A program made the translations under genes and the position numbers. A stretch of 64,000 bases of DNA from NCBI GenBank assembly GCA_037447605.1, contig CM074819.1:2221580-2285579 (forward strand). The letters are read 5' to 3'. Position 1 is the first letter of the stretch; the number at the start of each line of letters is the position of its first letter. This document shows positions 1-31,719 of the stretch, piece after piece. Source of the DNA: Zygnema circumcarinatum SAG 698-1b (lineage: Eukaryota; Plantae; Zygnematophyceae). Below the pieces are notes generated by a model. The model saw only the letters and a list, made by a program, of their open reading frames with translations. It had not been told where the DNA came from and did not search any database.

Positions 1-480
1 CCTCCTTCCTCCTCTCGCTGCCTCCTTGAAGCGTTGTTGAGCCTAGAGCCTAGGCGTAGCTTAGCTTTATTCTATTATCCTTAGGTCCTTTGCGACCAGT
101 TCCTCGTGGTTCCCCACGCTGATTTTGTCAATGTACATCTGATAGCATCGCCATCGTGAGATCAATGTTACATCTTTTGCTTTTTTAAATTGAAAATGGA
201 TATGGAGTCCTCACAACCAGGGCTTTCTGAATATCAAAGGTGACCTTAATCGGAGCATGTTTGGTACAAACTTATGTAAAGTGCCAAAAAGGAAAGTTCT
301 ACCTTGTATGGGTAAACCCGGTGTTAATGCAACAAGCTTTGACAAAATATCAATACATTCATTAAGCATTCGACAAAAAAGTGCCAAGTTTATACGAGAG
401 CACTCTAATCGACCTCTCCGACTTGATAAATTTTTCCCCACACATGATAGGTAGTGAGCCAATCACAGCTCATCATCACC

Positions 481-1717
481 TCATTGCAGGTACAAAAACT
501 TTTGTAGCGATTGAAGAAGGCTTGGCGGCCAATGCCTCGTTTCTGAAACCCATTCTAAATTAGTATACCGCTTGTCGAGCAATGTGGCGAGCGTGAATTG
601 CTGCTCAGCAGGCCTCAAGGCGTGCTTGTCCGTGTACAGGGCTGCGGCCAATGCAGCATGAACCTCTGCAGGAGACGAACGAGAACCTCGACATCATTCT
701 GGTTGTGGAGTCAACCTTACACACATGACATGCTTCCTCTCGTCAAATGGCATAAGAACTGCACTGCCAATATGAGATGTCAAAGCATGAATGTGATAAA
801 CAACCGCCTTCGATGCTGGTGAAACTTGAACTTATCTGCTCACCTGGATAACCCTTCAAGTCAAGGCTCATGTCCTCCATCTCGAGGATTGCCTGTGTCC
901 GGTCTCCGACCTCATAGAGCATCACTGCTCGGCCCACGCGAGCATATGCGGCAAGAGCGAGGTCCCCATTCTGTTCGACTACCTGAAAGGGAGGGAGGAG
1001 GAGGGAAAGGAGAGAGTGCGTTTGCTTAATGTAGTCCCTTGAAGAAAGCATCGCCCTGCTCTCCTCTCCTGTTCTTTCTCCTGAGCATAACATTCGCATC
1101 TGTAATCTATTCACCATAATCACCACCATAATCTTCAAGTAAACTTACTCCTTTTTCCATTATAGAAGCCTGTAAAATTATTTCAGCTCAGGTACCTGAG
1201 AGAAGAGATCCAACGCTTGAGCATATTTCCCTTCTGCTTGCGCTTCCTTCCCTCTCTCCAACGTTTCAATAGCCCTTGAAACTCTTGATGCGAACGCTTC
1301 ACTGTACGCCCTCTCATCCTCTGAAACCGGATCATATGCATATGCTCTCCTGACAACTTCTGCCCTTTCTCGCATTTCTCCAAACGCAGGAGCTGCAGAA
1401 GAAGCTAACAATGCTGCTCCCACGCAGAGAATAAGAAAGGCAGGTTTTACAGGGCCCTGAGAATCCTCTGAATGCCAACGAGCAGAAGGTACTCGTACTG
1501 AACTTCCAGGCACATTGCTGGCAAGGCAGCCTTTCCCTAAATGCTGCACTCCTGCAGAGAAGAGATTTTTTCTACTGTTTGACAACGGCATGTTTGCTTC
1601 GCGATGTCTAAATTGCAAGGAGGAGCTCATGTTAGGGTGGAGTAAGAGCTTCTTGCTGTGACTAAGTGAAAGAGGCTGGAGTGGTTTCGAGCTTGATATG
1701 GCTGACATTGTTGCCAT
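481..1717 (-). CDS. Plastid/thylakoid-targeted TPR-like protein (resembles Arabidopsis At3g05625-type proteins)
   Basis: Exons 1717-1196, 982-844 and 665-481 have GT-AG borders and total 846 nt, in frame. Ser-rich transit peptide, hydrophobic segment ending AAPAFG, then YARVGRAVMLYEVGDRTQAILEMEDMSLDLKGYPEVHAALAAALYTDKHA...TLLDKRY...HWPPSL, matching my recollection of a conserved plant TPR family. Confidence 0.85.
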
Positions 1718-2282
1718 ACTGCGAAGCAGAAAGAGGTGGAGAGAACGGTCAAGCCGACTGCAGGGCCTGCTTCAAAGCAGTCTCTCGTCCTCTCTAGACA
1801 GCATTTAAAAAAAAATAATAACAAAAAAAATCGAGAGCTGCAGGATAATTTCAATAGAATTGCACGCCAGCGAGATATCACATTTGAGCTCAAAAAATAA
1901 ATAAATTAAGCAACCAGCAGAAGAACTTGGTGAGCCCCTTGCAGGGGCAGAGCACAGGCCTGCAAATTGCAGGAGCTGGTCACAAGTGTTCTCAACATAG
2001 ATCGGCAGTTTGCTGTTAAACGTCCATGTGCATGGATCGGCATTTTCCTGTTATTATTTCTAGCAGGACGCGAATTTCGAGCATGGATTCTACTGAACTT
2101 TATTGCTAGCATGGAACTGTTCATCCGTAAATTTCCAGCGATAGAAAGTTTTTATACTTTACCGTAGCCAATGACAACGCGTCGGGCAGGTAAAATATAT
2201 TTTTTCCCTCTGCCCGTTTTCCTGGCAGCCATTGCCCCTCTCCTCCCCGCCTGCAGCGGCGGAGGGCGGGGCCGCCTCCGCC

Positions 2283-2378
2283 ATGCCACGTGTCAGCACG
2301 GCCGCATCTCCCGGCTGCCCTCCCCTGCGAGTGCTCACGGGAGACGAGCTCGGCCTCATTAAAGGTGAGAGAGAGGGA

Positions 2379-2409
<31 letters not shown>

Positions 2410-5400
2410 TGAGAGTGAGGGAGAGAGAAAGGGAGAGAGATAGAGTGAGAGAGAGAGAGTGAGGAAGAGAGAGAGTGAGGGGGAGAGAGAGAGTGCGAGA
2501 GAGAGTGAGAGAGTGCGCGAGAGAAAGAGTGAGAGAGAGAGAGAGAGGGAGAGGCAGAGGGAGCTCAGGCTGGGAGGGAGCTAAAGTCGTGGTTTGCTGA
2601 ATTGACTGCTAAAACCCTAACGCTTGGTATCGAGAATTTAATTTGGCTTATAATCCAAACCTTTTGAATCGCTGAAAAGTTCTCAAAACCTCATGTTTTT
2701 GTCAGAATGGAGGAAGATGACAGCTGTCAGCTGTCAGCCATGCTGAGGTTTTCAAAACCCTAATTGCTTCTTAAGGAATGTTTTTTCTGGCTCCTTAAGT
2801 TTTCTATGCAGTTCTCCGTGGTGCGACGGATGCAAAGGGCATGATTTTGCATAATGCATTTCTCTAGCTCCAGTTGCATCCTCGTGTTCTAGAGTTTGGC
2901 CGACAGCAGGCTTCAATTGTCATCAGAGCTAAGCGTAAAGAATTGTGCACTGTTTAGAGGGGTTCAAATCGCCCCATTTGTCTTCTTTTTCTCTCATTAC
3001 CTCCTTTAACTCCTTTCTCCTCCTCCCTCTCTCTCTCTCAAACTCACTCTCACACAAACTATCGTACTCTCTCCTCTGTCTCTCGCATTGAGTCTCCCTC
3101 CCTTCTCCCTCACTCTGTCTCTTTCACTAACTCGCCCTCTCTCATCTCTCCCTCTCTCTAGCTCTCACTTTTTCTCCCTCCCTCTTTTCTCCCACTGTCC
3201 CCCACTGTCTCTCTCTCTCCCCTCTCTTCCCCTCTCTTCTCTCTCACTGTCTCTCCCTCTCCCTCTCCCTCTCTCTCACACACACAAACTGTCTCTCCCA
3301 CTCTATCAATCTCTCGCTCTCTCTCTTCCCCCCCCCCTCTCTCCTCCCCCTCTCTCTCGTTCCGCTCTCTCAGTATAAGGATTTTCGCTTATGCCTCATG
3401 AAGCTGGACCACGTGGGGCCTTGCAGTGGTGGAGGTGCAAACCAACGGCTCATCCCTTCAGCAGTCGGCGAAATGGGGCGAACCCGAGCGCAGGAGAAGC
3501 ATTCAGAGCATGAGCATATCTGATGGGGCAAGCCCTGTAAGTAATGCAGGCCCTGCCATCTGTTTCATATAAAAAAGCCGGGATTTTGGGTTTAACAGGC
3601 ATGATACATACCCAAAGCCAAAGCTTGGCTGTGGTGGTTCTTGTTTAAGGTGTATTGAATTTCTCAAAACCAACGAGATAGGGTAATGAAAAAGTTTAAT
3701 AGAATTTTGCTTCATTCCACGAAGGACGTTGGATTGTACCACTTCCTACCACTTGACGTGTGTTGACTATGTGGATAGAAACACACTCTTGCGAATTACA
3801 TGTCTCACTGAAACCGGCGAGTTTATGCGCTCAAGCTTTGAAGTCTTGTAGACTCGTGAACCAACTTCTCTGTTTATCGTCAATGTAGGAAAGCGCAGAT
3901 TGTGGTTTAGGGTTCAGATTATAAAAGTTCGCGGGTTGTGGTGCAGATCTTAGCGGCAGCGAGGAGAGATGGCACGGTGAGTGAATGAAGTGGTGGCTCA
4001 GCTTCGTTGTTTCCCGCAAACGCGAAAGGTTCATGAATGTTGAAGATTTTTTGCACCGCTTGTGAAATTTAACAGTAAGCTTCAATTGTAACCAAACAAA
4101 GGAAAGCTGTTCCCGAATTGGGTGGAGATTTAAACTGCATGAAAGTGACATATCTCTTCTTAGATTGGTTGCAGGTTGACTTGCTCGATCCTTCAACGGG
4201 AGAAGCTCTCCTGCACTTTAATGCTCATGAAGGAACAGCAGCTGCCAAAGGGAGTTCAGCTGCTATTGCTGCACGGCAAGAAGGGGCCACCGTTTGCGGA
4301 CTGCAAACATTTCAAGCGTCTGAGTCGAGGTAAAGAGTAGATCATATCGTTCCTTTTTGCAAGTTATGAATAATGAGGGCTCAAATAAGTTGCCCGTAAA
4401 GTATTTCTAGCACTGCAGTCTTGAAAAAAAGTGCCTAATTACAGACTGTTTTTATAGTTTTTGTTTGCCTTGAAACTTCCAGTCTTTTTCTCCTCTCGTG
4501 TCACTCACCTCTCTCTGTGAGATGAAACTCAGTCTGCCTCATCATCTCCCTTTTCCCTTTCGGTCGCTCTCACCTCTCCCATCTTGCCCACTCTCCCTCG
4601 CCTCTATCCTTGCCTCCCTGTGTTTCCTTTATCTGACACACGCACTCTTTTTCTGCCCCTGTCCCTCCCTGCCCCCCCACCGTCTCTCTCTCCCCTCACA
4701 GATTGTCATTAGTCACATGCACAGAAGCAGGAGCAATCTGTGTGCGCCACGTGGACAGCAATGCGACCCAACTTGCATCAGATGGAAGCCAATCCTCTGT
4801 AGGGCAGACCCCCCCCATTGTTGCAGAATGGGGAGTTCTGAAGTCAACCAATAGCATCGTCACATGTATGCAAATGGACGGACTGCAGAAAGCCCTTGCA
4901 GTGGGAGGGTGAGTGAACGTGCCTTTTGGAGCCCCCCCCATGTCACAAGGACTCAGCGTGAAGCAAGCAGTCTTTCATCAGTCTTTCATCAGTCATTCAT
5001 CTGTCATTCATCAGTCTTTCATCAGTCTTTCATCAGTCTTTCATCAGTCTTTGATCAGTCATTCATCAGTCTTTCATCAGTCGTTCATCAGTCTTTCATC
5101 AGTCTTTCATCAGTCTTTCATCAGTCTTTCATCAGTCTTTCATCAGTCTTTCATCAGTCTTTCATCAGTCTTTCATCAGTCTTTCATCAGTCTTTCATCA
5201 GTCTTTCATCAGTCTTTCATCAGTCTGCTTTTGTTCATCACTACTGCTATCTAAGAGTGGCTTTAAGCATTCCCTTACTACATTTGCTTGGGTAATGGCA
5301 GGAAGGGTGCGGAGCTGAGCACGTGGGATTTGGAGACTAAAACGCAGCAATGGGCAGCTAAAGCTGTAAGCATCTCCCTGCACTCACTGCAAACTTCTTA

Positions 5401-8256: not shown

Positions 8257-11200
8257 TCAAGTCCCCCCGTCAAAGGTAGACACTCTTCTTGCAGCCCACT
8301 CCGCTGGGCGGACGGAGGGAGGCTCCGACCTCGCCCTCTGCACTCGCCCAGCCGGCGCACTCCCTCCCTCTCCTTCCTCTACGCTCAGATCGATAATGCT
8401 ATGCTCTCCCTCTCGCTTAGGAGTTACCCCTCCCGTCTTCCAAGGCTCGGAGAATGGAGAGGACAGAACAGCCGCTTTCTCCTGATCAAGGCAATGGCTG
8501 CCTGAATCTCTCGACCATGGGGAGACGTTGGGGAGAGAGACGGCCTCTGGTCTAACGGAACTGCGGCTGCGAACGCTGAAACTGCGCGAAAGGGGTCTAT
8601 TGGACTGCAGACTTCTCAGCCGGTTCTCTGCGAGCTGCAGCTCTGAAATGCTTGTGGAGAATTGGGGGGAGGGGACACTCCCGTCACCTTCTAAAGGAGA
8701 TGGAGAGGGCGGAATGGACCCTTCTTGAAACTTGAGTTGGGAGAGCTGCTCTGCTGCTAAAGCTGAGGGGAGTGGAGTCTGAGGTGCTGGGTTATGCCAA
8801 AAGAGGTTGGATTTTCCAGAGAGCCACTTTGCCACTGTATCTTCGGGTGCTCCGCTTGCTTTAGCTTCTCCTGCAGAGCGGCGGACTGACGAGGTGGAGA
8901 CTTTGTAAGGAGCAGAAGTCTGCTGCAGAGGGTTGTCCACCAATGAGATGTCTGCTGAATGTCGTACAGGGCTGCCCAAGGAAAGGGGACGGAACTGCTC
9001 AGGTGAGGAATCCCGTGTAGGGGTCCTCAACTCTGCCAATATAGGAGCTACACTTTGATATGAAGAGTGTCTCTCCTGTGCAGAAGGGTCCTCCAGACCA
9101 GCAATAGAATCCACCCCACCAAGGGGTGATGCCTTGCCGGGAGTTACGAGTTCAAGCAGAATATCTGAAGCAGAACTGTTGGAGTATTCTGATAACTGTT
9201 GTTCAGTGTTGATGCCTTCTCTTCCAGATGAACTGGGAGCTGATATGGAGATGCAAGGGATGCGTTCTGAACTGTTTGCGAGCCCTACAGGAGCAACATT
9301 GGCGAGTGACTGCTCGCTGACTGAGCCGCTCATTTCCGTGAACTCTCCCACCCGGTTCAATGTGGAGCCAACCAGAGAAAGTCGTTCGTTCGGAGAAGCT
9401 GTAGGATTGTCTTCGTCAGAATTGGAGAAGCCTTGCTCTGAAGATTGGGAAACAGTTTGATGCGCTGCCTTATACGACTTCTGAGGGACTGTTTGGAAGA
9501 TAGATGCGTGAATGGGATAGTGTGATGCACTAGCTGCCGGCGTTGGCATTGAAAAAGACAAGCTGGACTCCCTCGAGCTTTGCGATGATCCTCCTGAAAC
9601 ATCGCTCACCACTTGCTCTGCAAAATTCCCCCCTCTGAACACATTTCAACGACTAATTCTGTTTTGATGTAGTGATGCTTTCTATACGCACCCCCCTCGC
9701 CTCATCAATCTCTCAACGCAACTCGAAGATTTGAGCATGTGTGCAGAGTGAAAGTGAGACACTCTTTATACGTGAAATCCTTCTTCTTTTGAGCGTTTTG
9801 AAACTACTTTGAAACTACTTTCTCATCCTCTATTTTGCACATACCTCCACTTCTGGTGAGGTGCCGTGAGATGCGCCGGCTTCCTGTGAAGACAATGATG
9901 GGTTCATCGGGTTCATGGAGCCATGGCACAACATCCGGCAGCACCATATCCCTCTGGTCATGCACTCTATGAAGGCCCCCCCTGAAGCGGCCGCGAAAGA
10001 AGCCCATACAGCAGTTGATGCGTGCTCCCCGCTCGTGGGGAAGAGGAAGCATCTGCTTTTCAGTTTCACTAGCGGTCCGTCGTTCTGTTAGAGTTTGATG
10101 ATGAAGACGTTCAGCGATGTTAGAAACTATAAGCAAAGCATGAATATAGCATTGATATGATATGATCTTGATATGTTTGAGTCAAGGCATAGGAACATGC
10201 TGGTATGCGGCATATGTGTACGGTGGGATTGTGTCGATGGTATCTGAATGAATGTGAATATGTTTCACCAAAGACGTGACAAGGCAGCAATGTTGAGCTT
10301 TAACCGGAAAGGGTCATGGGAACCAAACGCTGCGAAAATTTTGTTGCTGTGGAGGTGGAAAGAGATGCACTTACCTCTATGAAGTTTCCAAAAGAAGATC
10401 AATACGCAAACCGCCAGTGATAGGAAGGCTATCAAAGTGACCAGCAGGATTATTGCCATCACTAGCCATCCCTTCCTTTCTAAAAATGATTTCCTTTGCG
10501 GCAGAGGTGGGGGGCTGCTAAAATCCGTCAGTGTGCCGATCACTGCTTCATTTGAAAGAAGAATGCGTGTGAGATCTCCATAGAATGTGTCCTGTGAAAA
10601 GTTACAAGGAGAAGCCATTGAGCATGTTCCCGCTGCCATCTGAGCTAACCTTGCCGCCCACAGACCCTGTGCTACAGCTGCCACTGCAAATACCTTTCCC
10701 AGAAATTGGATTCCGGTGAGGTTGGCGGCTTCCTCTCTGTTATCTAATGGAGAAGAAAGTTGAGAGTTCACCAAGGATATGGCCCCTGCAGCTACATGCA
10801 AAATCTCCTGCATCCTTTTGTCTGCCGTGGTTGCAGCAGAAGCAGGTGGTCCAGCAAGTCTAAAGGAGGAATTGTTGGTAGGGTTTTGGGAGAAGGGCGG
10901 ACTGCGAGATAGATTTGACTGCACTGGAGGTGGAGAAGTAGAAGGGAGAGACTGGCAATAACCTCGCGATGCATTGAGGAGGCAGGAGGCTTGGGAGAGA
11001 ATTGACTCGATGATAGCTGTATCACCCAAGTCCACTTTGGTTGGAGATAGCTGGGCATTGACATCGAAGGCTGCCCACATTGCCGACCCAATTGCTGAAT
11101 ACATTGACTCTGTTGCAGACAGTGTCTGATTCTCATCCTCTACTCCAAAGAGAGCTGCTCCCATGGAAGCTGTATTTTGGACACGAACCTGCTCAACAAT

Positions 11201-14200
11201 GATTACGGCTGCTGTAAGCTCTGCAGGGGTTGCACTACCCAGAGAATCGCTCCTTGCAACAGCAAGAATCGGATCAACATTCCCAACTTGCACTGATGTG
11301 AGGTTGAGCCCCCTCGTGACAATAGTGTTAGCCTGGTCAAGACTAGACGAGAGAAGGTTGATGATGTGCCAAACGATCGTCGTGAGAGGAGATATAGCAG
11401 TAGAGGCAGGAGGAGCCATGAGAGGGCCGGAAGGACGGAGACCCGTGTTCAAGTCGTGACAAGAGGCTGAGTGAGGATAGAGAACAAGGGCCCCTCCACT
11501 GTAATTGCTTAACAAGAAAGTTCCCATTTTATCAGTGATTGTAGTGGCTTCGCCGTCATCCCAATTGCCATTAGAGTTCGTATCAGCGAAGACTTGACAG
11601 CTGATGAGATATCCATCGTAAGCAACACCTGCTAAGGTGGATGCCGCAGCGGAGGGGGGGGCTGCTGACGGAGGAGTAAGGAGGGTGGCTTCAGGGGGCG
11701 GAGGCAATATGGGGCTTGAATAAGGAGGTGGAGGAGGGGTGCGAGGGATAGGGGAGGGAGGAGAAGAGGGACGAGGAAGTAGAGGGGAAGGAGGAGAAGA
11801 AGCGTGAGGAAGAGGAGGCAAGGAAGGACGAGGAGGAGGAGGGGATGACGGACGAGGGGGATAAGGATGTTTTGGCGGCGGCGGAGGAGAAGTAGGGAGA
11901 GGCGGGGGGGGCGGCACAGGAGGAGAAGGAGAAGGAGGAGGGAGAGGAGGAGCAAGACGAGGTGGTGAAGGAGGAGAGTAAGGCTGAGGAGGAAATAGAG
12001 GAGAAAGACGAGGGAGAAGAGGACGCGGAGGGGGCGGAGGAAGAGGAGGGGAAGAAGGATGAGGAGAAGGAGGACGAGGATACGGCTCAGGAGGGAGAAG
12101 GTTTGAAGGATGAAGACGAGGAGGAGGGGAAGAAGACGGAGGAGGACGAGAATGGGATGGAGCCGCAGCAGCAGCAGGATGAGGAGGAGGAGGCGGAGGC
12201 GGACGAGCAAGTAGACGCGGAGAAAGAGGAGGAAGGGGAGGAGGACGAGGTGACGGAGGAGGCGGAGGGGGAGGAGAAGGAGGAGGAGGAAGAGGATGAA
12301 GAGGACGGGGAGAAGGGGGAGCGAGGGGGGGAGGAAGAGGACGAGGCTGAGACGGAGCAGCTGCAACAGGAGGAGGAAGAGGATCAGCGAAAGGAGGACG
12401 AGGAGGAGGAAGAGAAGGCGAAAGCGGGGGAGAGGGAGGGGGAGGGGGAGGGGGAGTNNNNNNNNNNGGGAGGAGAAGTTGGAGGAGATAGAGAGAGAGG
12501 AGGAGAAGATAGAAGAGAGCCTGGGGCTAAAGGAGGGAAGGGAGGAGGAGAAATTGTAGGAACGGGAAATGGAGGTGGAGAAGGAGAAGGTGAGACAGTA
12601 AGAGAGGGAGGACGGCGACGAGAAGGAGAGGGGAAAGGTAAGGGAGGAGGGGGAGGGGGAGAGGGCGATAGAACGGAAGGAGAAGAGAAGGGAGGGGACA
12701 GAGGAGGATTGGGAGAAGGGATAAGAGGAGGTGGAGAACGGAAGGAAGGATTTGGGGGAGGAAAAGAGAGGGGACGGTGGGAGAGAGATGGTAAGGCTGG
12801 AGGAGAGGGAGGAGGAGGAACGAGGAACGTGGGAGGGACAAGCGGAGGAGAGGCAGGGAGAAGAGGAGGAGGGGGAGGAGGGAGAGGGGAGGAAGGCAAG
12901 GAAGGGGAAGAGAGAAGGGTTGGAGAATCGAGAGGGGATGGCGGAAACAGACCGTGAGAGAGAGGAGGAGATAGTCGCGGAAAGGAAGCATGAGGAGAGA
13001 GAGCGGACAGAGTGGGAGAACGAGGAAAAGGCGGAGGAGGGATAGGCGGCAGAGGAGAGGAGAGAGGAGGAATTGTGTTGGGAGAAGGACCGGGAAAAGG
13101 TGGGAGGAAGGTAGGCGAAGGAGAAGCAGAGGACGGAGGAAATTCAAGACGAGGATGAGGGAAACGAGGTGGTAGCGGGGGAGAAGTGGAAAGGGAAACT
13201 GGAGGAAATGAAGGAGGAACAGGCGAAAAGGAAAGGAAGGGATGAGGAGGAGAATTTGGGAATTTTGGATGTAAGGACGGTGAGGGAGAGATAAACTGGC
13301 TGTGTGGAGGTGGGAGAGAACTAATGTGAGGGGGCGACGGTAAAAGTCTGCGAGGAGGAGACATAGGGGGGGGACGCTCTTGTGGCAAAGATGGTGGACA
13401 GGAAGGAGCAGGCGTATCAGTGGGAGGAGGAAAAGACTTCTTTGGTACATCAAGCTGGCCGGAAAGGTCGGGTGCTTCAGTCGAAGGATCAAAACGAGAT
13501 TTTGCCGTTGATTCAGCTAGTGAGGGAGATCGCCCTATTGGCGGCTTATTTACGGGGGCAGGAGCCGTAGCGTCCACAGACGACAATGGGGGCGGACAAG
13601 GGCCTTTGGGAGTGGAAGGAGTCCGATGGCCTGAAGAAGGATGTTCAAGGGAAGGCTTTGGAGGGAATGGCGGCAGCAAAAGGAATGGAGGTACGTGAGG
13701 ACTTTCAAGGGGGCTGGTCGGGAGATATGGCGGTGGTGAAAAGTTTGATGTTCCGACGCCTACACATGACATGGTATTGGGAGCTGATCAGATACCTCTT
13801 GTCAGACACAGCAGAGCATACTTTACGTCCTTTCCATAAATGCAAATGTTAAATCTGACCTCAAAATGTCTAAGGAAGTGTGCAGCGGAAGTGAGAGGCC
13901 ACTGACCATCAGGAGGAGGGTGTAAGCAATTCTGCCAGATAGTAAGCGTATTGAGGCAGAATGCGACTCCATTTTCTCCGGTTGCGGCTATCGTTAGGAG
14001 AGTAGATGGGCTCATCAAAGTTATAAGTGATGACGGTATACCCGGTGCTAAGAACTGGCCATTGAGTGTGACATAGAAACTGTTTCCAGTCGCTTCAGCC
14101 GTAACTGTAATCTGCTTCACTTCCGAGGGAAGTTCGAGATTTTGGCTGTTTTCTCGACTTTGAAGAGCTTCGTCTATACGGATCCATATTTGAGCTCGTG

Positions 14201-21691: not shown

Positions 21692-24600
21692 TCAGTCCTT
21701 GACGGCGACGATGTCGACCATGACCGGCTGCCCCAAAGCAGTCCTCAGCGCCTTAGAGAGGTGCTTGGAGTGGTCGTCCTTTCGGAACACATCCACAAAC
21801 TTTGCCGCCGTTCCTATGCGCACGAAATAGCCCTCCCCGGTAGAGCTGACTGACAGGAGGGAGCCCTATAAATGGAGAGGAGACAGCAGGAGGAGGGCAC
21901 GCCGAGGTCAGGAATGCGCATGAAATCGTACAACCACTCTTCACCAGTTGGGTCTTAGTCTCTGCCAAAACCAACAGGCACAATCTCCTCCTCTCATCAT
22001 AGAAATAGTGAAGCTTTAAGAGGAGTTATAGAGAGAGTTCCATTCATACCTTCTGGCGAGTAAGAGCTTGAGTCGTTCGGCTCTCCAACATAGCACATGT
22101 TTCCTCCCAGATGTCCTTCAACTGCTCCTCTTTCCTGTCATTCTCTGAAGGGGGCAGCCCAGACTCGCCGGCGTTGCAGCCGCCATCACCACCCCCTTCC
22201 CTCCCACTCGAATTTCCGCTTCCCAAGCTTGGTAAGCCACTTTCCAGCTCCCCCCTGGCAAGATCTGCCATCCTTTCTTGGACCCACTTCGGAAGCGAGG
22301 CTATGTCCTCGGAGCTGAGAATCTCCCTAGTATGCGAACGCTTTCCTAACTTCAATTCATAGTCGAGCTCGGAGACCCAATCTGACGTGAGTTCTTGTGG
22401 CCCAAAGTGGCAATAAATCATATTTGCCCAGTTTTTGGAGTCAGATACAAGGTGGTGTAAAAGGGGAGAACGGGAGGCTGCCAACGTAAGGGGACGATTC
22501 AAACTGACAATGTAATCAAGAGTCGCGGAAAGAGCTGCCTTCGTTTGAAGTCCCTCGGGCACCTCAAGGTCGTCTAGAAGCACCAATGACCTCCCAGTAG
22601 CGTCCTTTGCTATGTCTGATAACTGCTGCAACTGTTCTTTGAAAGAGATTCCGCTAGAAAAAGGTTTGCCAGAGGTCTTCGGACTCACCATGATGGAGTC
22701 TGCAATACCCACTGATGCCCAATAAGCAGGGACGAAGGACCCCATTTGCGCCATCACTTGAATTTGGCCGATTTGGGAAAGGTAACAGGTTTTTCCGCTA
22801 TGACGAGGTCCCACTAGAAGCAGCGTACTTGACAACGGCCATTTTCTTCTTTCATCTTCGACTTTCCTGACAACCTTCCTCTCCGCTTCTGCTTCTCCTG
22901 CTGCCTCCACTCGCTCCGTTGGGGCTATGCTGCAACTACCGCTCTCCACTCTCTCCTCTCCCTGCAAAACTTCCTCCTCCGTTTTTGAATCAATCTTCGT
23001 GTCACTCTTAGGCTTCTTCAAGACCTCGACTCCGGGCAACCGTTCGTCATTACTCCGAGTACTTAGAAAAATTGAGTTGTGGACAAAAGGTTGACCTTCT
23101 GGCAGCGCTGCCTCGACAGATGGATGCCATCCAAGGAACACAGAAAGGCTGTAATCTTCCGTTATACGGGGCCGCACGTACCCTCTCTCTGCTGCTACTT
23201 CTGCTTCGTTTCACAACCCACGCGAAGAGAAATGAGCCGTTTCACTTACACTTCCATTACACTTCGGAGAATCATCGGAGTTCTTATGAATGAGTTCTAA
23301 TGGACATTGGAGATCCTTGGAACCTTGAATACTTCAAGAATTCCAGTAATTGACAGGGTGAAATATACTGTCGGAAAAGCCTTCGGAAGAGTGGCTCCTA
23401 ACACATAGAAACCTTTCCAACATCTAGAAGCTTTTAAAAGACAAGAGAAAAACATACGGAACTTTGGGAACTGCAGAAACTGCAAAAAACTTGCCAACCT
23501 TCGAAATTAGACAAACTTAAAACAACCCAAAACCAAAAGTCGGTTTCAGGATTGCAGGCTTACCTGCAAAACTTGCCAGTACGTCTATCTCTGCCAGAGC
23601 CTCTCCCATCTCCCAGAGCAGCTCCACCTTCTCTCCCAAAACCACTTTAAGCTTCAGTGCAGCATCTGTGGCTTTGAAATTTCCACTCCCATTTAGTTCT
23701 TCCACTTGTCTATGGTAGCCATAAGTGTCCGACTCATTCGCTCGAAATCCTTCACTCTTCTGCACATGCCAAGAAAGAATGTATTGGGATTCTACACTCT
23801 TCTTAACTATGCAGAAACATCAAATGCATTCGACAGGCTCGTCCTCCCCCTCCCGGTAGATGACGATTGTTCGGGGTACAGTACAAAAGTTCTATGGCTT
23901 CGCAATTTTGAATATTCTACCGTTTGAGCCTATTCATGGTTACGAGGTCCCCTTTCCTAGAAGAATAACAATTACCAGCTGCCCTTCAAGAAGCGACGAT
24001 AGTAGTATGCTTTTGGAGAGAAGTCCTTCTGGCAAAATTCCTTTTTGTGCGGCCTCCAGTAATACTCCCGAGCCTTCAGAATGGCCCGACCCTCTTCCGA
24101 CTACAGTCGCCACACTGCTTGCGAGGGCAATAAGCTCTCTGTACCCTCCTCTGAATGAATGATCAGGACTGAGAAACGTGGAGGGAAGTGGGAGAGAATT
24201 GAGAGGAGGTCGTGGAGGGCGAAGAGAATGAAAAGAACGAGAAAGAGAGAAGGGGGAGTGAGGGGGAAAAGGAGGAGGAAGAAAGGAGAGGAGGAATTGG
24301 GAGGAGAAACGGGTAGGAGAAAATTGGGAAAGAGGAGAGCAGGGGAGACGGAGGAATTCCAGGAAAGAGCAGGGAGCAGACGATGAGAGGGGAATGAAGA
24401 CGAGGTAGTTTTCAGCAATTCACATTCTTAACTTATATTCAACGGTCTACAATGTAAACCTATGTGACGGGCGCACTGCAACCTACCCAGCATCCGCCAT
24501 ATTCCAAGCGAGCCGAGAGGTGAGCTTCTGTATGTCTGCCAAGCGGCTGAGCTGCTCTCTGATCGATTCACGCAGACTGTGGGCAACGGTCAGAGCCTGC

Positions 24601-27600
24601 AATAGAGGTAGCAGCTCAGTAAATTTTGTCAAAACAAGGTCATTCGGGGTTTTAAGATTGAAGGAGACGATGTTTGATGTTTTCAGCTCACAATGATCTG
24701 CAATGTTATCAGCGAAGGCATGGAGGGTGGGATCGGGGATGAATCGGGTCACGAATGGCGCTAGGTACAGCTAAAGCTAGAATTGAAACAAACTCAAGTT
24801 CTGAAACCAAACGTAGATTTCAAAACTGAAATCGAGCAAGAGAATTTTCGAGTGTAGCATTTAGCATTTGCGACCCTGTTGTTGCCCTTTCTTAGATCCA
24901 TTTTTTCACAGATTTACAATTTTAGAATTTTGACTTCCGGACTCTTAAGCTTCTGACGGAGCTCCTTTGTACTACGGCACTGATCTGACGAGAGGAGAGG
25001 CGAAAGGCGACCTCTACTGCATCATGGCGGCGCAGCAAAGTCTGCATATCGCAGGAGGGTTGGAGCAGCCATTGCCGCAGTTTGCGCGTTCCCATTGTGG
25101 TCATTGTGCGGTTCAAAGCGGTCTGCAGGCTGGAGGATGGGCCGCGAGGAAACTCCACCAACTGCCATAAAGGAAGAAGGGGTATAAAGCAAGATGGGAT
25201 TGGAGGATGGTAGAGGTTTTTTTCGTTTCAGGAGTTGGGGTTTAATAATTGTAATTGTTTTGGGGTACGAAAAAGAAGGGTCGATAGGAGAGCTTACGGT
25301 CGCTTTATGCAGTTCTGTAAATCCACACTTTCAGATTGACAGTATTTGTGGTTTTTTGTACGACTGACGGGTGGAATGCTCCTCGGAACAACCTATAGGC
25401 CACAATAAAATAATAATACTAATACGGGTTCAATAACTTTTGTAGCAGGACGCATACCTCAAGGAAGGACACAGTGTCAGGGTTCAACTGAAGGGCAGAC
25501 TTCGCGTCATAAAACCGCGGTCGTTGTAGAAGGGCTCGACTTGATGCTTGCACATTCTTATCTTGAACATAACTGCATAGGAGGGAGACAGAAAGGGTAA
25601 GAGCGAGAGAGTGAGAGAAGAGAGAGAAGGAAGAAAAGGAACAATAGGGAAGGGGCGGGACTGGGAGGGAGGGAGGGAGGGAGGGAGGGAGGGAGGGAGG
25701 GGGGGAGGGAGGAAGAGACAGGGGAAAAAGGTATATCTTAACATGGCAAGTGCAGTGGAAACCTGGAAAGCCTGGACTCAGTGAGCAAATACTCAAAAAC
25801 CCCAAAACGGTGATGCCCCAAACTTCCACCCCCCTCCATGGAAGCAGAAAGAAACGCACACCAAGAGGGTGGCGGCTCCTCTCGCAGAGAGATGTCCTCC
25901 CTTTGGACCTCCCCAGAAAGGTTGCTGCGTGTCCGCCGGAGACCCCTGCTCCATAGAGCAGCTAATCACCCATTCAGGAGACCGGTAATGAAAAAGGAAA
26001 AGGCTAGTGAAAAAGGCACATGGCCTATATAAGGTTCGGAAGTTCATAGTTTTTTAAGCTTCGAGATTCTCCTTAATGGTAGAGGCCCACATGCGCCTCT
26101 CGAATCTTCATGATTAGGTATCATCAGGCATCCATGAACACCGACGCAAAGTTCAGTTATTTCTCTCGTAAGGATGACTTTAAGGTAGAAAGCGTGTTTT
26201 TTAGAGCTTTCGAGACTTTCTTACTTGAAATTTATTGGGTTTTTGAAGTTTTGACCGTACCTCAGAAACAAGTGAAACTCTGCGTTGGACATCGTTTTGC
26301 TGATTTATACTCCTCCACAAAGAAACAGCTTCAGTAGTTGCCATTTCCTGCACATTGAACCAATGTGCAGAGCTTCCCGTCACCACTAGACAGTGCCTTT
26401 CTCTCCCCTTGTGGGTGTTTCATTAGTAAGGTGAACACTCAGGAATATCCCACTTTCATATAACTAAGATTAGTATGGGGCTCTCGAATAGTGCTATTTA
26501 GGCTAATAGAGTCGTCCAAAAACCCTAAAAACCCTAAAAACCCTAAAATGTACCTGAGAGACTAGTAACAGCTCCGCCGGATTCAGTCGAAGAATCTCAT
26601 CGCGCAAGGCCTCCTCCCCCTCCACTTCAGTCGCCCAAAACTCACCTGCTCCACCATGCAAATATCGTTCCCAAGCCATTCACTCATTCCACTCATTACT
26701 GTCTCATCCAAATTCACTGAATTCATTCCCTCCCACCGCCCCCCCCTCTCTCTCTCGCTCTCACTCTCCACCCCACACCCCGCCCTACACCACCCCGGCG
26801 ATCAAGTCAAGGCTCTCGATCTCGCCAATCCCCTTCTCATCTCTCTTTCCTGCCTCCTCCTCCGTCGTCTCCTTCTGCATCTCCCTCTCTCTGCTCTTCT
26901 CTTCCCCAATCTCGCCCGCGACTACATCCTTTCTCCTCTCCTTTGCACCTCTCCTCCCAGAGTCCGGCCTATCCCAACATCTCTCACAATCATCCGCGTT
27001 GATCCGCCAGAGGGCCAAATACTGAAGGAGCTGATCTCAGTGGGCAAGAAAAAAAAGTTAAATCTTCTAAAATCGTGAAGCAAAGATAAGTATTTTTCTT
27101 AGAAAATATACGGTTTCGCTAGTTCAGTGCTACTCTGCCTCTTTCTGGATGCCGCCTCTGAACCACTCACCTGTTGACACGTCAGCATAGGCGAGTCCGT
27201 ACTTGTCGCAGCCCTCTTCTGACTTCACAATACTGACCAAGAAGTTGTTTGACCCTGAAGGCAACGTTATGGGGTCCAGCGTGGTGCCAGGTGTCAGCAC
27301 GCTAGTGGCCTGCCATCTTGACTCTCCATGACCAGTCCCTACATCCATCTGCAAGTCACAACGAAGGATAGGGTCAACTACAGAAGGGACACTTGTCAGC
27401 CTTAGCCCCAAACTAGCTTTGACAAAATAAGATGAAAATAGAGAAAATAGAAAAGAAAAAAAGGAAAAGGATTTAAAACCCTCGGGTTACGCTAGTTACT
27501 TCTTTAAAGAGGCCAATTGAAAACCCTTGCCCCAACAGGAAGGGAATTGACCGCTCGATTTCGCTGCAGGGAGCCGCTGCTATAGGAGCCACCTTGGCTG

Positions 27601-30600
27601 CCTGAAGGGATAGCCATGGCGAAGATGAATGGTAAAAAACAGGCCATGTAGACCAGGGCCACATTCGAACCCAGAAACCCGCAAAGCATGAAAACAAGGG
27701 AAAAAAAAGGGACTCTACGCGCAACCGACTTACCTCCCCACCAATTCTTCTTGTGAACTGCTCTGCACTTATCCCGGTTGCTAGAACGTCTGCGTCCTCA
27801 AAGTATGCCTGCAGGGAAAGAGAACTTTGCATGTGTGACAGACTATTCACAAACAGTAACATTCTTCATTTCTTAGAGTTTTGATGTGCCAGATTCACAA
27901 AACAGCAAACGTAAGGCGATGAGAATTCTACCTTAGTTTAGGCCTGAGAATATGTACCTCGTAGGAGTCCCCATTCTGAAAAAGCAGCAGGTAGTCCGGC
28001 CGCTCCTTTTTCGCAGTTAGCCATGCCCTGAACTCTGGTCTGAGGCCAACTGCCTCCTCCTCCACATATGCGCTATCTGCCATCTCCTCCAACTCTCTCG
28101 CTCCGCTCTCATCTTCACGTCCCACTTCTTCGCTTGCTCTCTCCCCCACAGTCCGAGCAGCGGGAGATACGGCCGCTTCTCTTCTTCTCCTGCCTGCTTC
28201 TACGCTTACCTGCTCGGTTGCCAGAGGATTCCATCCCCTGTCTGCTGCATCCTCATCAAACATCCATTTTTCAACATCATTTGACTCGTCCCGTCTGGGC
28301 AATTCATCTTGACTGGAAAATGCTTCCCTTAGATCTCTTCCAGTTAAGGTATCCTTCACATTGAAAACCGGGAAACCAGTCTCTCCATAATGAAGGCCAA
28401 GTGAGCCTTCGATAGCGTCGTCTGCAACCTTTCCTCCTCGTGACGAACCATTTACCGTTTCCTTATTGGCTAGCTCATTTTCTTCACTGAGAACGAAACC
28501 TCTAGTTGTACCCTCAATTGCCCCTGCATGCCTTCCCCTACCCGCAGATTCTTCCGCTTCTCGGGTTTCTTGCAGGTCTTGGAAAAGAGGCATTTCAAAT
28601 CGCTTCGTTCTTTGGGCATCTCTCGCTAATTCTTGGTGGCTCGGAGGCCTCTTCTTCGATTCGGGATTCCCATCAGCACCAAATGTGTAGCGACATAACG
28701 ACTCTAAAGGAAGCTTCGAATTTTCCAGCCAGAAGTTTATAACGTCAAGCAGCATAAGGACATCCGGGCCTGCTCGATGCGCAGCCGGACGAGACGGAAG
28801 GCCATAGTGGCTATGTAGAGTGGCGAGCTTGAGGTTCTTTGGACCTGCCAAATGAGCTGCAGCACAGGGAATACATAGATATGGTTCACAGCCACGCTGA
28901 CTGTCTTAACGTATCTTGCTCAAAGGAGAATCTTAAAATCCTACAGGAAATGACAATTTATTAACACGATGTCCGAACTGTTGTGGGTTCACGACCAGGG
29001 GGCTTGAGGAAGGAAAAGAGCTATGAATGTGAATTGGGAAGAAACGCAAAGGATAGAGGAGGGAGAGGAAAGGGGAAGAAAGAAAGAAAAGATAAGCACC
29101 TAGAGACTTCGGATGCAGTACCCTGCCCAGCACAAGCGTATCCAAGAACAGCCAATTGGAGGGCATGATGATCTTGTAGCGTTCAAACTCGCGTTTCAAA
29201 ACCGGGACATCAAACGTTTGTCCGTTGTGCGCAGCCAATACAATTGGAACATCGCTCTGTCGTCGGCTTTCCACAAAGTCTATGAAGGCCCGCCCCACCA
29301 CCGCCCAGCTGACACCCAAATCGACGGTCAAGCGTCTCCAATAGAGGTGCGGAAAGCCTTTCAAACAGAAAGGAAACAACACAAGGCCTGGCATAGTGGG
29401 ACAGCATATAAAAGCTTTCGTATTCGACTCTGATCCTAGTTTTCATGACGTCGGGTGCGTATTTTACAAGTTTATTGTACCTCAGGTCATGCATTTATAT
29501 GCCTAATGCTTCAAGAAGACAAGGATGATAAGTCGTTGAGGGGTTCAACAACAATTCAAGAAGATCCTATGTAGGTAACTCCATATTGTCTCCCTAGTGG
29601 ACTTCAATCAAATTGGATGTTCATTGTCACTAAACAGCATGCATTGCCACAGAAAGGTTGCGAATCCGTTAGTACTTATACTTCCTCCCCTTTCTACTAT
29701 TCCCATAGTGCACACAACCTCCCCAACCCCATACCAGCCAATACACCCTCACCCTCACGCTCAACGTGCAGTTTTCGCGCGGCTTGTGTCTCCAGCACAT
29801 GGGCTGCTACATGAACTCACGAAGTGGCCCTTGTCGCGTACAGACGAAACCACTCATGGCAGTTTGGCGTGTCTTCTCATGAAGCATATGCTGACCTTTT
29901 TTAATGCAATCACGGCTTCTGCACTGCATTCATGCGCATAGCACTCACTCGGGAACGTCGGGCCGACAGACATCGTTGGTGTAGATATTGTTCGATCTTG
30001 ACGCCCCGAGAGGAACAGGCACTCTCGGATTAACAAGCGACTCCATGCTGCTGAACGGCCCCCCCGTTCTATCTCTTGCCGCCACCTCGATAATGCGGTC
30101 GCTCGAGCCGAGTCCCGTGGTTTCCAAATCAAACCCTATCAACACCAATGGGGGCTTGTCTCCACCTGTCAACGATTCAACTCCGGAGTGCAGTGAAGCA
30201 TTCAAGCCTGACTTCCAATGTTTCCCCCTTCCTGCATGGCCATAGGCATGGGGTATTCGGTCATCTGAAATTCGCCAGGATGGCGGAGCTGCCAGTTGGC
30301 TACATCGCCATTCCCGCCGTTGACTTCTCAAATGCTCCGAAATCGATAAGTTCGGCGTTCCAAAAATCATTTTTTTTTCAGGTTCTCTGACGCAATGTTG
30401 AAAATAGGAGGCGTTGTTTGTGGAAATTGTGGGAGAATATGGATAGAATGTCGGCATGAGAGAAGTGGTGGGCAAGGCAGGAGAGTAAGCTGAGAGCAGC
30501 AACCGCCTATCAACTGTTGTCATTTGGCTATATCTTTGTACCCTCCGCATTTTATTCAACTTCAGCGTATACCTGCTCTTCGAAGCGCAATACAAACTCC

Positions 30601-30790
30601 AAATCCCAATACTAGAGCACGCCGTGGAATATACATGAGGCATTTGCAGGGGCAAGACACCACCCCTTTTGACAAGCTTCTTCTGACTGGAGAGAGTAGA
30701 ATTCCGTAGCACAGCAGGTGCTGTGCCACAGTGACATCCATGGCGTCCATACGAGGCCAACATACCCTCCCTTCCCCCACAATTCCACAT
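21692..30790 (-). CDS. Fusion of a DPD1-like DEDDh 3'-5' exonuclease, a bacterial-type MutS (domains I, II, III, V; degenerate) and a DnaX/STICHEL-like C-terminal domain; probably organelle-targeted
   Basis: Exons: start (ATG 30790 or 30550) to 29949 (ExoI FDLETTG); 29308-29100 (ExoII AHNGQTFD, NWLFLDTL); 28844-27958 (ExoIII HRAGPD plus MutS-I KKERPDYLLLFQNGDSYE); 27808-27734; 27601-27500; 27348-about 27171 (VLTPGT...YGLAYADVSTG); 1-3 unresolved exons at 27.1-25.9 kb; 25572-25458; 25161-25012 (LNRTMTTMGTRKLRQWLLQP); 24596-24487; 24138-23976; 23759-23564 (LAEIDVLASFA); 23188-22050 (GPRHSGKT, MAQMGSFVPA, LVLLDD); 21865-21692. All resolved junctions are GT-AG and phase-consistent. Confidence 0.88.
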
Positions 30791-31211: not shown

Positions 31212-31451
31212 ACAAATTTCTTTTGGAAGTAGAGAATTGCGGAATTTTAATAAAATTTGATAAATGCTGTATAAATTTTCTACAACCACATACCAAAACT
31301 GTACGGCGCACATAACAAAGTGCGCTGGTTAGTAGCGCAGGGCTGACGTGCGATTTCTGAACCCAGAACCTCTCGTGCTCAATCTCCGCCGTCCCTTGTC
31401 GCTCGTGCGGCAATCGACGCCGTTGCTTACACGTGCGGCGGCCGACCCTGC

Positions 31452-31719
31452 TGGGCCCCCCTACATTGGCGCGGCGGAGCCCTGCGCGGCCCTCTTTCTC
31501 GCCGCCGCGATTAGGGTTCGCCCTCGCCCTCCCTCCCCCCTTCCCCGCCTCCTCCAGGAGGGCGGCCGCCATGGTGTCCGGGTCGGGAGTCCAGGCCAAG
31601 GTGGTGGTCGTGGACGCGCGCCACCATATGCTGGGCCGGCTGTCGTCCATCATCGCCAAGGAGCTTCTTAATGGCCAGAGAGTGGTGAGCATGCGTCCTC
31701 AGCGTTTTTAGGGTTAGGG
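31452..31719. promoter_or_regulatory. Site II (TGGGCC) and telo-box motifs around the RPL13A start
   Basis: TGGGCC at 31452, ATTAGGGTT at 31510-31518 and TTTTAGGGTTAGGG in intron 1 (about 31706-31719). This motif pair is established for plant ribosomal-protein promoters. Confidence 0.55.

Follow-up and report, generated by a model that had tools for sequence, protein, structure and literature searches.

The closest described relatives of the gene analyzed in this work are the DPD1-MutS1 proteins, named by Sloan et al. in 2024 ("Expansion of the MutS gene family in plants", Plant Cell 37:koae277, PMC12292046). According to these authors, a cyanobacterial-like MutS1 was acquired through plastid gene transfer, is present in liverworts, mosses, lycophytes, ferns, Cymbomonas, and Zygnema, and was lost in seed plants; many Viridiplantae MutS1 proteins carry a fused N-terminal region orthologous to the exonuclease DPD1, in which the catalytic pentad is conserved (PMC12292046). 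Here we analyze by computational means a member of this family encoded in a stretch of 64,000 nucleotides (hereafter "the window") of Zygnema circumcarinatum SAG 698-1b (assembly GCA_037447605.1, contig CM074819.1, positions 2,221,580 to 2,285,579), where an earlier note, made from the letters alone, had pointed to an exonuclease-MutS-DnaX chimera. The whole gene spans positions 21695..30790 of the window on the minus strand. Our preferred reading, to which we assign a probability of about 0.75, is that the gene is the Zygnema orthologue of DPD1-MutS1 and that its product would act in the processing/degradation of DNA ends or in the surveillance of recombination by means of a MutS scaffold, an exonuclease, and a docking tail.

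The observation of the earlier note was confirmed, and its biological reading proved largely right; the novelty that it implied did not survive comparison with the literature. Indeed, the fusion architecture is that of a published and widespread plant family, already named and described for Viridiplantae (PMC12292046), and the Zygnema gene is its orthologue, not a new class. The same organellar and exonuclease-positioning hypotheses are found in that paper, where it is suggested that the fused enzyme might be the excision exonuclease of mismatch repair or might act on invading 3' ends in recombination (PMC12292046). That the F-x-E motif has been lost from Zygnema and from ferns is also already on record there, as the only motif loss given, and plant MutS1 proteins are said to retain ATPase elements; for the Viridiplantae MutS1, the paper mentions neither STICHEL, nor tau, nor any C-terminal domain (PMC12292046). 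What goes beyond it is the tail domain, the decay of the MutS core in Zygnema, and the loss of the Walker B Glu in ferns, the decay of the motifs being a small addition, since the ATPase elements had been described as retained. The only mention of DPD1 in a 2026 preprint on MSH1 is as a free exonuclease, and no functional study of DPD1-MutS1 was found in the literature. The chief value of the analysis lies in the correct annotation of the gene as a streptophyte-algal DPD1-MutS1. The same cyanobacterial-like MutS1 reportedly bears the name "chloroplastic MSH1" in Hofstatter and Lahr (2021).

The Zygnema gene shares with the other DPD1-MutS1 the order of the modules, that is, an N-terminal extension, a DPD1-type DEDDh exonuclease, a long linker, and MutS domains I-V, and its modeled product runs colinearly with the proteins of Riccia, Adiantum, and Ceratopteris. 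However, the Zygnema copy is far more divergent than these: when 1.84 billion representative proteins were searched exhaustively with the open reading frame (ORF) carrying domain V, no close relative emerged, the top matches were long plant proteins, and the best identity was 36%. Among the members of the family are Riccia sorocarpa KAL3686956.1 (1864 amino acids, aa), in which the Pfam domains RNase_T, MutS_I, II, III, IV, and V, and PF23007 were found, and a single ORF of 1761 aa on a 6.6-kb Logan contig, with RNase_T, MutS_I-V, and PF23007; others belong to Adiantum, Ceratopteris, and Diphasiastrum, or come from a EukProt transcript and from more Logan contigs. A word search with a fern exonuclease region returned neither the protein of this species nor one of a close relative.

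The comparison may be extended to three other systems of plants and algae. The DPD1 of seed plants (AT5G26940 in Arabidopsis) has an orthologous DEDDh domain with the same motifs but, unlike the fusion, is a free protein, some 300 aa long, that has neither a MutS body nor a tail. Plant MSH1 is likewise an organellar protein of the MutS family with a fused nuclease; however, it belongs to another MutS lineage, its nuclease, placed C-terminally, is an endonuclease of the GIY-YIG type, and both a DEDDh domain and a DnaA_N-like tail are missing from it (PMC12292046). The chlorophyte DPD1-RecG fusions of Micromonas, Ostreococcus, and Volvox, compared here only through their published description (PMC12292046), also place the exonuclease on a DNA-binding organellar repair protein, the carrier being the RecG helicase instead of MutS.

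Gene structure and the exonuclease-MutS junction

The gene model was built by hand: a profile obtained from eight full-length land-plant homologues was compared with all the stop-free fragments of the minus strand, and the matching fragments were joined at GT-AG sites that keep the frame. The matches are strictly colinear, from the exonuclease through the last 56 codons, and the resulting model, running from 30790 to 21695, comprises 16 exons and 15 introns (all GT-AG), is free of stops, and encodes a product of 1538 aa. Once spliced, this product matches the profile of the eight land-plant DPD1-MutS1 proteins with an E value of 1.8e-186, colinearly from the exonuclease to the C-terminus, and the family profile is unbroken over residues 215-968. 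Such an open frame, 4.6 kb long and divided among 16 exons, lies far beyond chance. On the minus strand, exons 1-5 are located at 30790-29949, 29308-29100, 28856-27958, 27808-27734, and 27601-27500, exons 6-10 at 27309-27171, 26645-26554, 26347-26261, 25945-25860, and 25572-25458, and exons 11-16 at 25161-25012, 24596-24487, 24168-23976, 23759-23564, 23200-22050, and 21865-21695, with the stop codon at 21697-21695. The model is uncertain at the start codon (ATG at 30790 or at 30760), at the donor of exon 8, and at the acceptors of exons 9, 14, and 15.

The evidence that the exonuclease and MutS are joined resides in exon 3 (27958..28856, minus strand), which carries, in a single open frame, the ExoIII motif, an acidic linker of about 220 aa (28707-28045), and the initial 28 aa of MutS domain I (RPEFRAWL...GDSYE, 28041-27958, at the very end of the exon). 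The minus-strand ORF that spans this junction extends over 27928-28851, and its end is matched by positions 2-30 of the Pfam profile MutS_I. That the last DEDDh motif and the start of MutS domain I lie in one exon had been the central claim of the earlier note, and it holds: the acceptor of our model is at 28856, and the one chosen in the note, at 28844, is an alternative acceptor 12 nucleotides downstream and in the same frame. The donor, at 27958, reads GAG/GTACAT (exon/intron), and the exon is present, complete, in five sequencing runs of unknown kind. Since ExoIII and the start of MutS domain I stand within one open exon, the fusion does not depend on any splice guess, and the two modules are joined in one ORF at the DNA level.

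This organization also bears on the possibility that the Zygnema locus yields mainly separate exonuclease-only and MutS-only products, through alternative starts, polyadenylation, or splicing, with the full fusion as a minor isoform. In favor of such a scheme stands the Ceratopteris richardii locus KP509_29G036200 (P0005, P0155-P0161), where nine isoforms are annotated beside or including the fusion of 1592 aa, among them an "Exonuclease domain-containing protein" of 875 aa and N-truncated forms of 1265, 1033, and 1003 aa in which the C-terminal part is preserved; it may be that DPD1-MutS1 loci do give rise to alternative products. However, exon 3 is a single open frame through the junction, its long linker runs without a stop over some 220 codons, and the entire fusion is encoded as one ORF on contigs of 5.3-6.7 kb from relatives (1761, 1625, 1593, and 2027 aa; in EukProt, orf 49-4944). 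A 5-kb ORF on such fern and bryophyte contigs is most simply read as a spliced transcript, so that in relatives the fusion is probably expressed as one mRNA. Hence, we regard the separation of the products in Zygnema as very improbable.

Upstream of the exonuclease, residues 1-214 (30149..30790, minus strand) form an N-terminal extension, basic, rich in Ser/Thr, and poor in acidic residues, which is a candidate organelle transit peptide. In agreement with what had been noticed previously on its composition, the first 60 aa of the model include one D/E, seven K/R, and ten S/T. The extensions ahead of the exonuclease in the orthologues are 190-330 aa long.

Some other possibilities were considered in the construction of the model. 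An internal intron of exon 3, starting from a strong-looking donor at about 28210, was discarded, no usable acceptor being available. The gene is not a pseudogene, as judged from its 1538 open codons, and bacterial contamination or horizontal transfer was ruled out by the 15 spliceosomal introns and by the existence of plant orthologues. As for the introns themselves, the donor of intron 6 (27171) and the sequence at its acceptor side (26646), both on the minus strand, share the same 9-mer, CAGGTGAGT, and therefore exon 7 opens with a donor-like GTGAGT. Moreover, CT-rich low-complexity runs within introns (25600-25745, 24170-24420, and 29040-29095, minus strand) read as long proline/serine/leucine "ORFs".

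The exonuclease module and its relation to DPD1

The DPD1-type DEDDh 3'-5' exonuclease corresponds to residues 215-400 (28708..30148, minus strand) and is distributed over exons 1-3. By direct reading, ExoI (FDLETTG) lies at 30133-30113, ExoII (AHNGQTFD) at 29232-29209, and ExoIII (HRAGPD) at 28779-28762, all in frame on the minus strand and all intact, as previously claimed. The pentad is complete, with D221, E223, D314, H377, and D382 aligning with the corresponding residues of the orthologues; the Asp and the Glu of ExoI, the Asp of ExoII, and the His-x4-Asp of ExoIII that characterize DEDDh enzymes are all found. Taken alone, the ExoI piece matches positions 1-63 of RNase_T (PF00929) with 20.9 bits, under the cut-off of 24, as is explained by the division of the domain among three exons; the exonuclease domains of the orthologues score 76-89 bits.

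The Zygnema exonuclease is 40-47% identical to the domains of the land-plant fusions, and the domain of a fern fusion, used as a query, retrieves seed-plant proteins annotated as "exonuclease DPD1, chloroplastic/mitochondrial" at 55-59% identity. In the phylogenetic tree of the exonuclease domains, rooted on bacterial epsilon/PolC-type domains, the plant sequences, including that of Zygnema, form one DPD1 clade (support 100/100), in agreement with the DPD1-type assignment made at the outset. Within it, the free DPD1 of seed plants are monophyletic (90/92) and adjoin the fern fusions and a group formed by the liverwort, another long fusion, and Zygnema; the deep order of this tree is unsettled, and the exact placement of Zygnema is unsafe on account of its very long branch.

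These data bear on a further suggestion of the earlier note, i.e., that the fused form may represent an ancestral state of DPD1. The monophyly of the free DPD1 agrees with it, and so does the distribution among lineages, since fused forms are found in earlier-branching ones, which fits the idea that seed plants retained only the free DPD1; however, the deep branching order does not settle the matter. Overall, the sequences are compatible with an older fused state, of which the free seed-plant DPD1 would be a remnant after the loss of MutS1.

The MutS body and the C-terminal tail

Downstream of the linker, pieces of the Pfam domains MutS_I, II, III, and V were matched in the minus-strand ORFs, in order and colinearly, so that the MutS nature of this part, previously recognized by eye, is borne out by profile searches. 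Domains I and II correspond to residues 622-882 (25458..28044, exons 3-10, with pieces of MutS_II), and domain III, together with an apparently strongly reduced clamp (domain IV), to residues 883-1098 (23565..25161, exons 11-14), where positions 18-59, 65-91, and 171-194 of the MutS_III profile were matched; no match to MutS_IV was obtained in the Zygnema pieces. Exon 15 (22050..23200) encodes domain V, the ATPase, and the first part of the C-terminal domain, all these features lying on the minus strand. The E value of the MutS_V match is 4.1e-17 (63 bits), those of P0004 and P0007, two full-length homologues from land plants, ranging from 1e-42 to 1e-67.

The alignment revealed that the MutS core is degraded in Zygnema. 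The mismatch motif F-x-E reads S-Y-E (within GDSYE, 27972-27958, minus strand), that is, the column of Phe36 is occupied by Ser and the Glu is kept. In the ATPase, Walker A (GPRHSGKT, 22811-22788, minus strand) is intact; compared with MSH3, bacterial MutS, and the liverwort protein, however, the Glu of Walker B (LVLLDD, 22586-22569) is changed to Asp, the GRGTST.DG loop is replaced, STF reads ISF, and the "ATH" motif reads ASR (22484-22467), its His being replaced by Arg. Furthermore, the landmarks flanking domains III-IV are separated by 164 residues in Zygnema versus 229-234 in 14 other aligned MutS, a shortening of about 66-70 residues which hinges partly on the choice of exons (±16 aa at exon 14); the introns of the clamp region, of 318 and 216 nucleotides, are too short to conceal an exon of 70 aa. 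With respect to the DPD1-MutS1 described so far, the Zygnema copy additionally lacks the Walker B Glu and the His motif and apparently most of the clamp. The ATPase core is ordinarily the best conserved portion of MutS. In Zygnema it is only 28-32% identical to any homologue, compared with 28-37% for the C-terminal tail and with the 40-47% of the exonuclease; by contrast, the liverwort core is 51% identical to that of a bacterial MutS.

The decay is not limited to Zygnema. In the fern-type members (P0007, P0173, P0174, P0028, P0166, and P0156) the Walker B Glu is replaced by Gly or Asp, and most of them have also lost the His of ATH; in the lycophyte Diphasiastrum the Glu of Walker B is preserved and the His position is occupied by Tyr, and two full-length bryophyte-type members (the Riccia protein and a Logan protein of 2027 aa) keep the Walker B DE, the F-x-E, and the His. 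The decay of the ATPase and mismatch motifs in ferns and in Zygnema probably occurred independently.

This heterogeneity is relevant to the idea, included among the hypotheses proposed for the family (PMC12292046), that the protein is a working organellar mismatch-repair enzyme, in which MutS1 would sense the errors and the built-in exonuclease would excise them, replacing the MutL/ExoI partners lost in Viridiplantae. In its favor, each of domains I, II, III, and V can be recognized, Walker A is intact, and the bryophyte- and lycophyte-type members retain the Walker B DE (the two full-length bryophyte-type ones also the F-x-E and the His). However, Zygnema has a Ser in place of Phe36, an Asp in place of the Walker B Glu, neither the GRGTST.DG loop nor the His, and a clamp apparently shorter by about 70 aa, and in the E. 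coli MutS the replacement of either Phe36 or Glu38 with Ala abolishes mismatch recognition (PMC12292046). Given the loss of Phe36, of the Walker B Glu, of the His, and apparently of about 70 aa of the clamp, a canonical mismatch recognition followed by an ATP-driven sliding-clamp cycle appears unlikely in Zygnema, and a working mismatch-repair enzyme of this kind is, in our opinion, quite unlikely. Judging from these motifs, true mismatch repair is a less likely role in this alga than the processing/degradation of DNA ends or the surveillance of recombination.

The last 85 or so residues of the protein (1452-1538; 21698..22142, minus strand, split by the intron 22049-21866) correspond to a DnaA_N-like domain of the STICHEL type (PF23007). 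The segment 22142-22050 matches positions 5-32 of this profile (15.6 bits) and the segment 21865-21698 positions 34-84 (13.2 bits); the contiguity of the matched positions on the two sides of the last intron supports that splice. The spliced tail matches a profile built on the tails of the orthologues only with an E value of 3.6e-16, and the same orthologue tail profile found no tail in about 140 other MutS sequences, mostly bacterial. PF23007 was matched in all ten of the family tails (the isolated Riccia tail scores 29.2 bits, against a curated cut-off of 27), and the domain is conserved from Zygnema to ferns; it occurs in all the full-length DPD1-MutS1 members examined, whereas it goes unmentioned in the published description of the family (PMC12292046). 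A literature search linking STICHEL-type domains with MutS gave nothing relevant.

The AlphaFold2 model of the Riccia tail (predicted local distance difference test, pLDDT, 80.8) shows the order alpha-alpha-beta-beta-alpha-alpha-beta and is KH-like. Its best match among the solved structures is DnaA domain I (4tps_D; Z 10.6, root-mean-square deviation 2.2 over 80 of 84 residues), followed by the DnaA domain I of H. pylori (Z 7.8), the helicase loader DciA (Z 7.5), the E. coli DnaA N-terminal domain (Z 6.9), and the E. coli tau in the complex Pol III alpha-beta-epsilon-tau (5fku_E; Z 6.6); the template-modeling (TM) scores with the ESM Atlas models of DnaA and DnaX_C are 0.74-0.81. It was VIA-align and the search of the ESM Atlas that singled out DnaA domain I and DnaX, plain Foldseek having placed the KH domains of ribosomal S3 on top. 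A profile search of the PDB sequences with the tail yielded only a weak match to DnaA (E 0.33), and when the tail alignment was run against bacterial and archaeal genomes, 47 stretches were matched, none of which was confirmed as a relative.

In family and fold, therefore, the tail resembles the C-terminus of STICHEL/DnaX (PF23007, DnaA_N-like_STI; PF20964, DnaX_C), DnaA domain I, DciA, and tau domain V; unlike in STICHEL, DnaX, and DnaA, it sits on a MutS, with neither an AAA+ clamp-loader nor an initiator module. The "DnaX" of the label given in the earlier note thus stands as regards this small DnaA_N-like tail and was overstated for the rest: no AAA+ clamp-loader Pfam match was obtained in the Zygnema pieces or in the full-length orthologues, and a full DnaX fusion was ruled out. 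As a separate observation, the ESM Atlas clusters include stand-alone PF23007 proteins, about 81 aa long, from tailed phages (Uroviricota) and from bacteria, which indicates that the STICHEL-type DnaA_N-like domain is not restricted to plants.

The conservation of the tail is of interest also for the hypothesis that the MutS portion is a decaying relic, selection acting on the exonuclease only and the remainder heading for loss, as happened in seed plants. The MutS catalytic motifs have been lost, the ATPase core is the least conserved part of the Zygnema protein (28-32%), and seed plants did end with a free DPD1, as this hypothesis would have it. Nevertheless, about 1100 codons past the exonuclease are open over 13 introns with intact splice sites, and the conservation of the extreme C-terminal domain (E 3.6e-16, 28-37% identity) is unexpected under drift. 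We therefore consider it scarcely probable that the MutS portion is a mere relic.

Proposed function and neighboring features

According to the reading that we favor, i.e., that of a DPD1-MutS1 acting on DNA ends or in recombination, a nuclear, intron-rich gene would encode a MutS1 of cyanobacterial type to whose N-terminus a Mg-dependent DEDDh 3'-5' exonuclease was added; this exonuclease would survive alone as the DPD1 of seed plants. The basic, acid-poor N-terminus, together with the literature on DPD1, suggests that the protein might be imported into plastids and/or mitochondria, where it would probably dimerize through its MutS body, serving mainly as a DNA-binding scaffold. This scaffold would set the exonuclease on 3' ends, such as those of nicks, invading strands, or linear organelle DNA, and the DPD1 module would trim or degrade the DNA ends in the 3'-5' direction. 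It is known that DnaA domain I and DciA dock on the DnaB helicase, and tau domain V on Pol III alpha; by analogy, the tail might dock the protein onto a replication or recombination partner.

The decay of the motifs in ferns and Zygnema, while the exonuclease pentad and the tail were kept, points to the delivery of the nuclease, and not the sensing of mismatches, as the conserved job of the family, a role that fits the later survival of the free DPD1 in seed plants. In addition, the presence of the tail in every full-length member examined, from Zygnema to ferns, provides a testable handle on which machine the protein joins. A more specific version can be envisaged, in which DPD1-MutS1 is a three-part protein made up of an epsilon-like exonuclease, a MutS body, and a docking domain of the tau/DnaA-domain-I type in common with STICHEL. 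In this case, the tail would tether the exonuclease to the organellar replisome (polymerase or helicase) as a replication-coupled 3'-end editor, and MutS would be the scaffold; we consider this version unlikely.

Several points weigh against the end-processing or recombination role. Concerning the gene itself, the model, with its exon boundaries, and the fusion in Zygnema are read from DNA alone, and the searched protein library contains no protein of this species, the best match being 36% identical; the exon choice on which the shortening of the clamp partly hinges belongs here as well. Concerning the activities, the Zygnema exonuclease branch is very long (1.52 changes per site), and the enzyme might have altered or lost its activity despite its intact motifs. 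The intact Walker A Lys may allow ATP binding and some nucleotide-switch function to persist, and the Asp at the position of the Walker B Glu may still allow a slow hydrolysis. Lastly, the targeting to organelles is a prediction from amino-acid composition and from the literature, and the KH domains of ribosomal protein S3 and Era score about Z 7, like the weaker matches of the tail, so that the fold by itself identifies no partner.

Regarding the surroundings of the gene, the plus strand carries, at 31433-31711, an ORF resembling ribosomal protein L13a, which starts about 640 bp away from the DPD1-MutS1 ATG; the two genes are arranged head to head, and a bidirectional promoter region (upstream to about 30800) may be common to both. 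Farther away, the region 10001-14000 exhibits an extreme strand asymmetry, with a GC skew of +0.63 and an AT skew of +0.47 in 12001-14000, and is a purine-rich coding or repeat tract.

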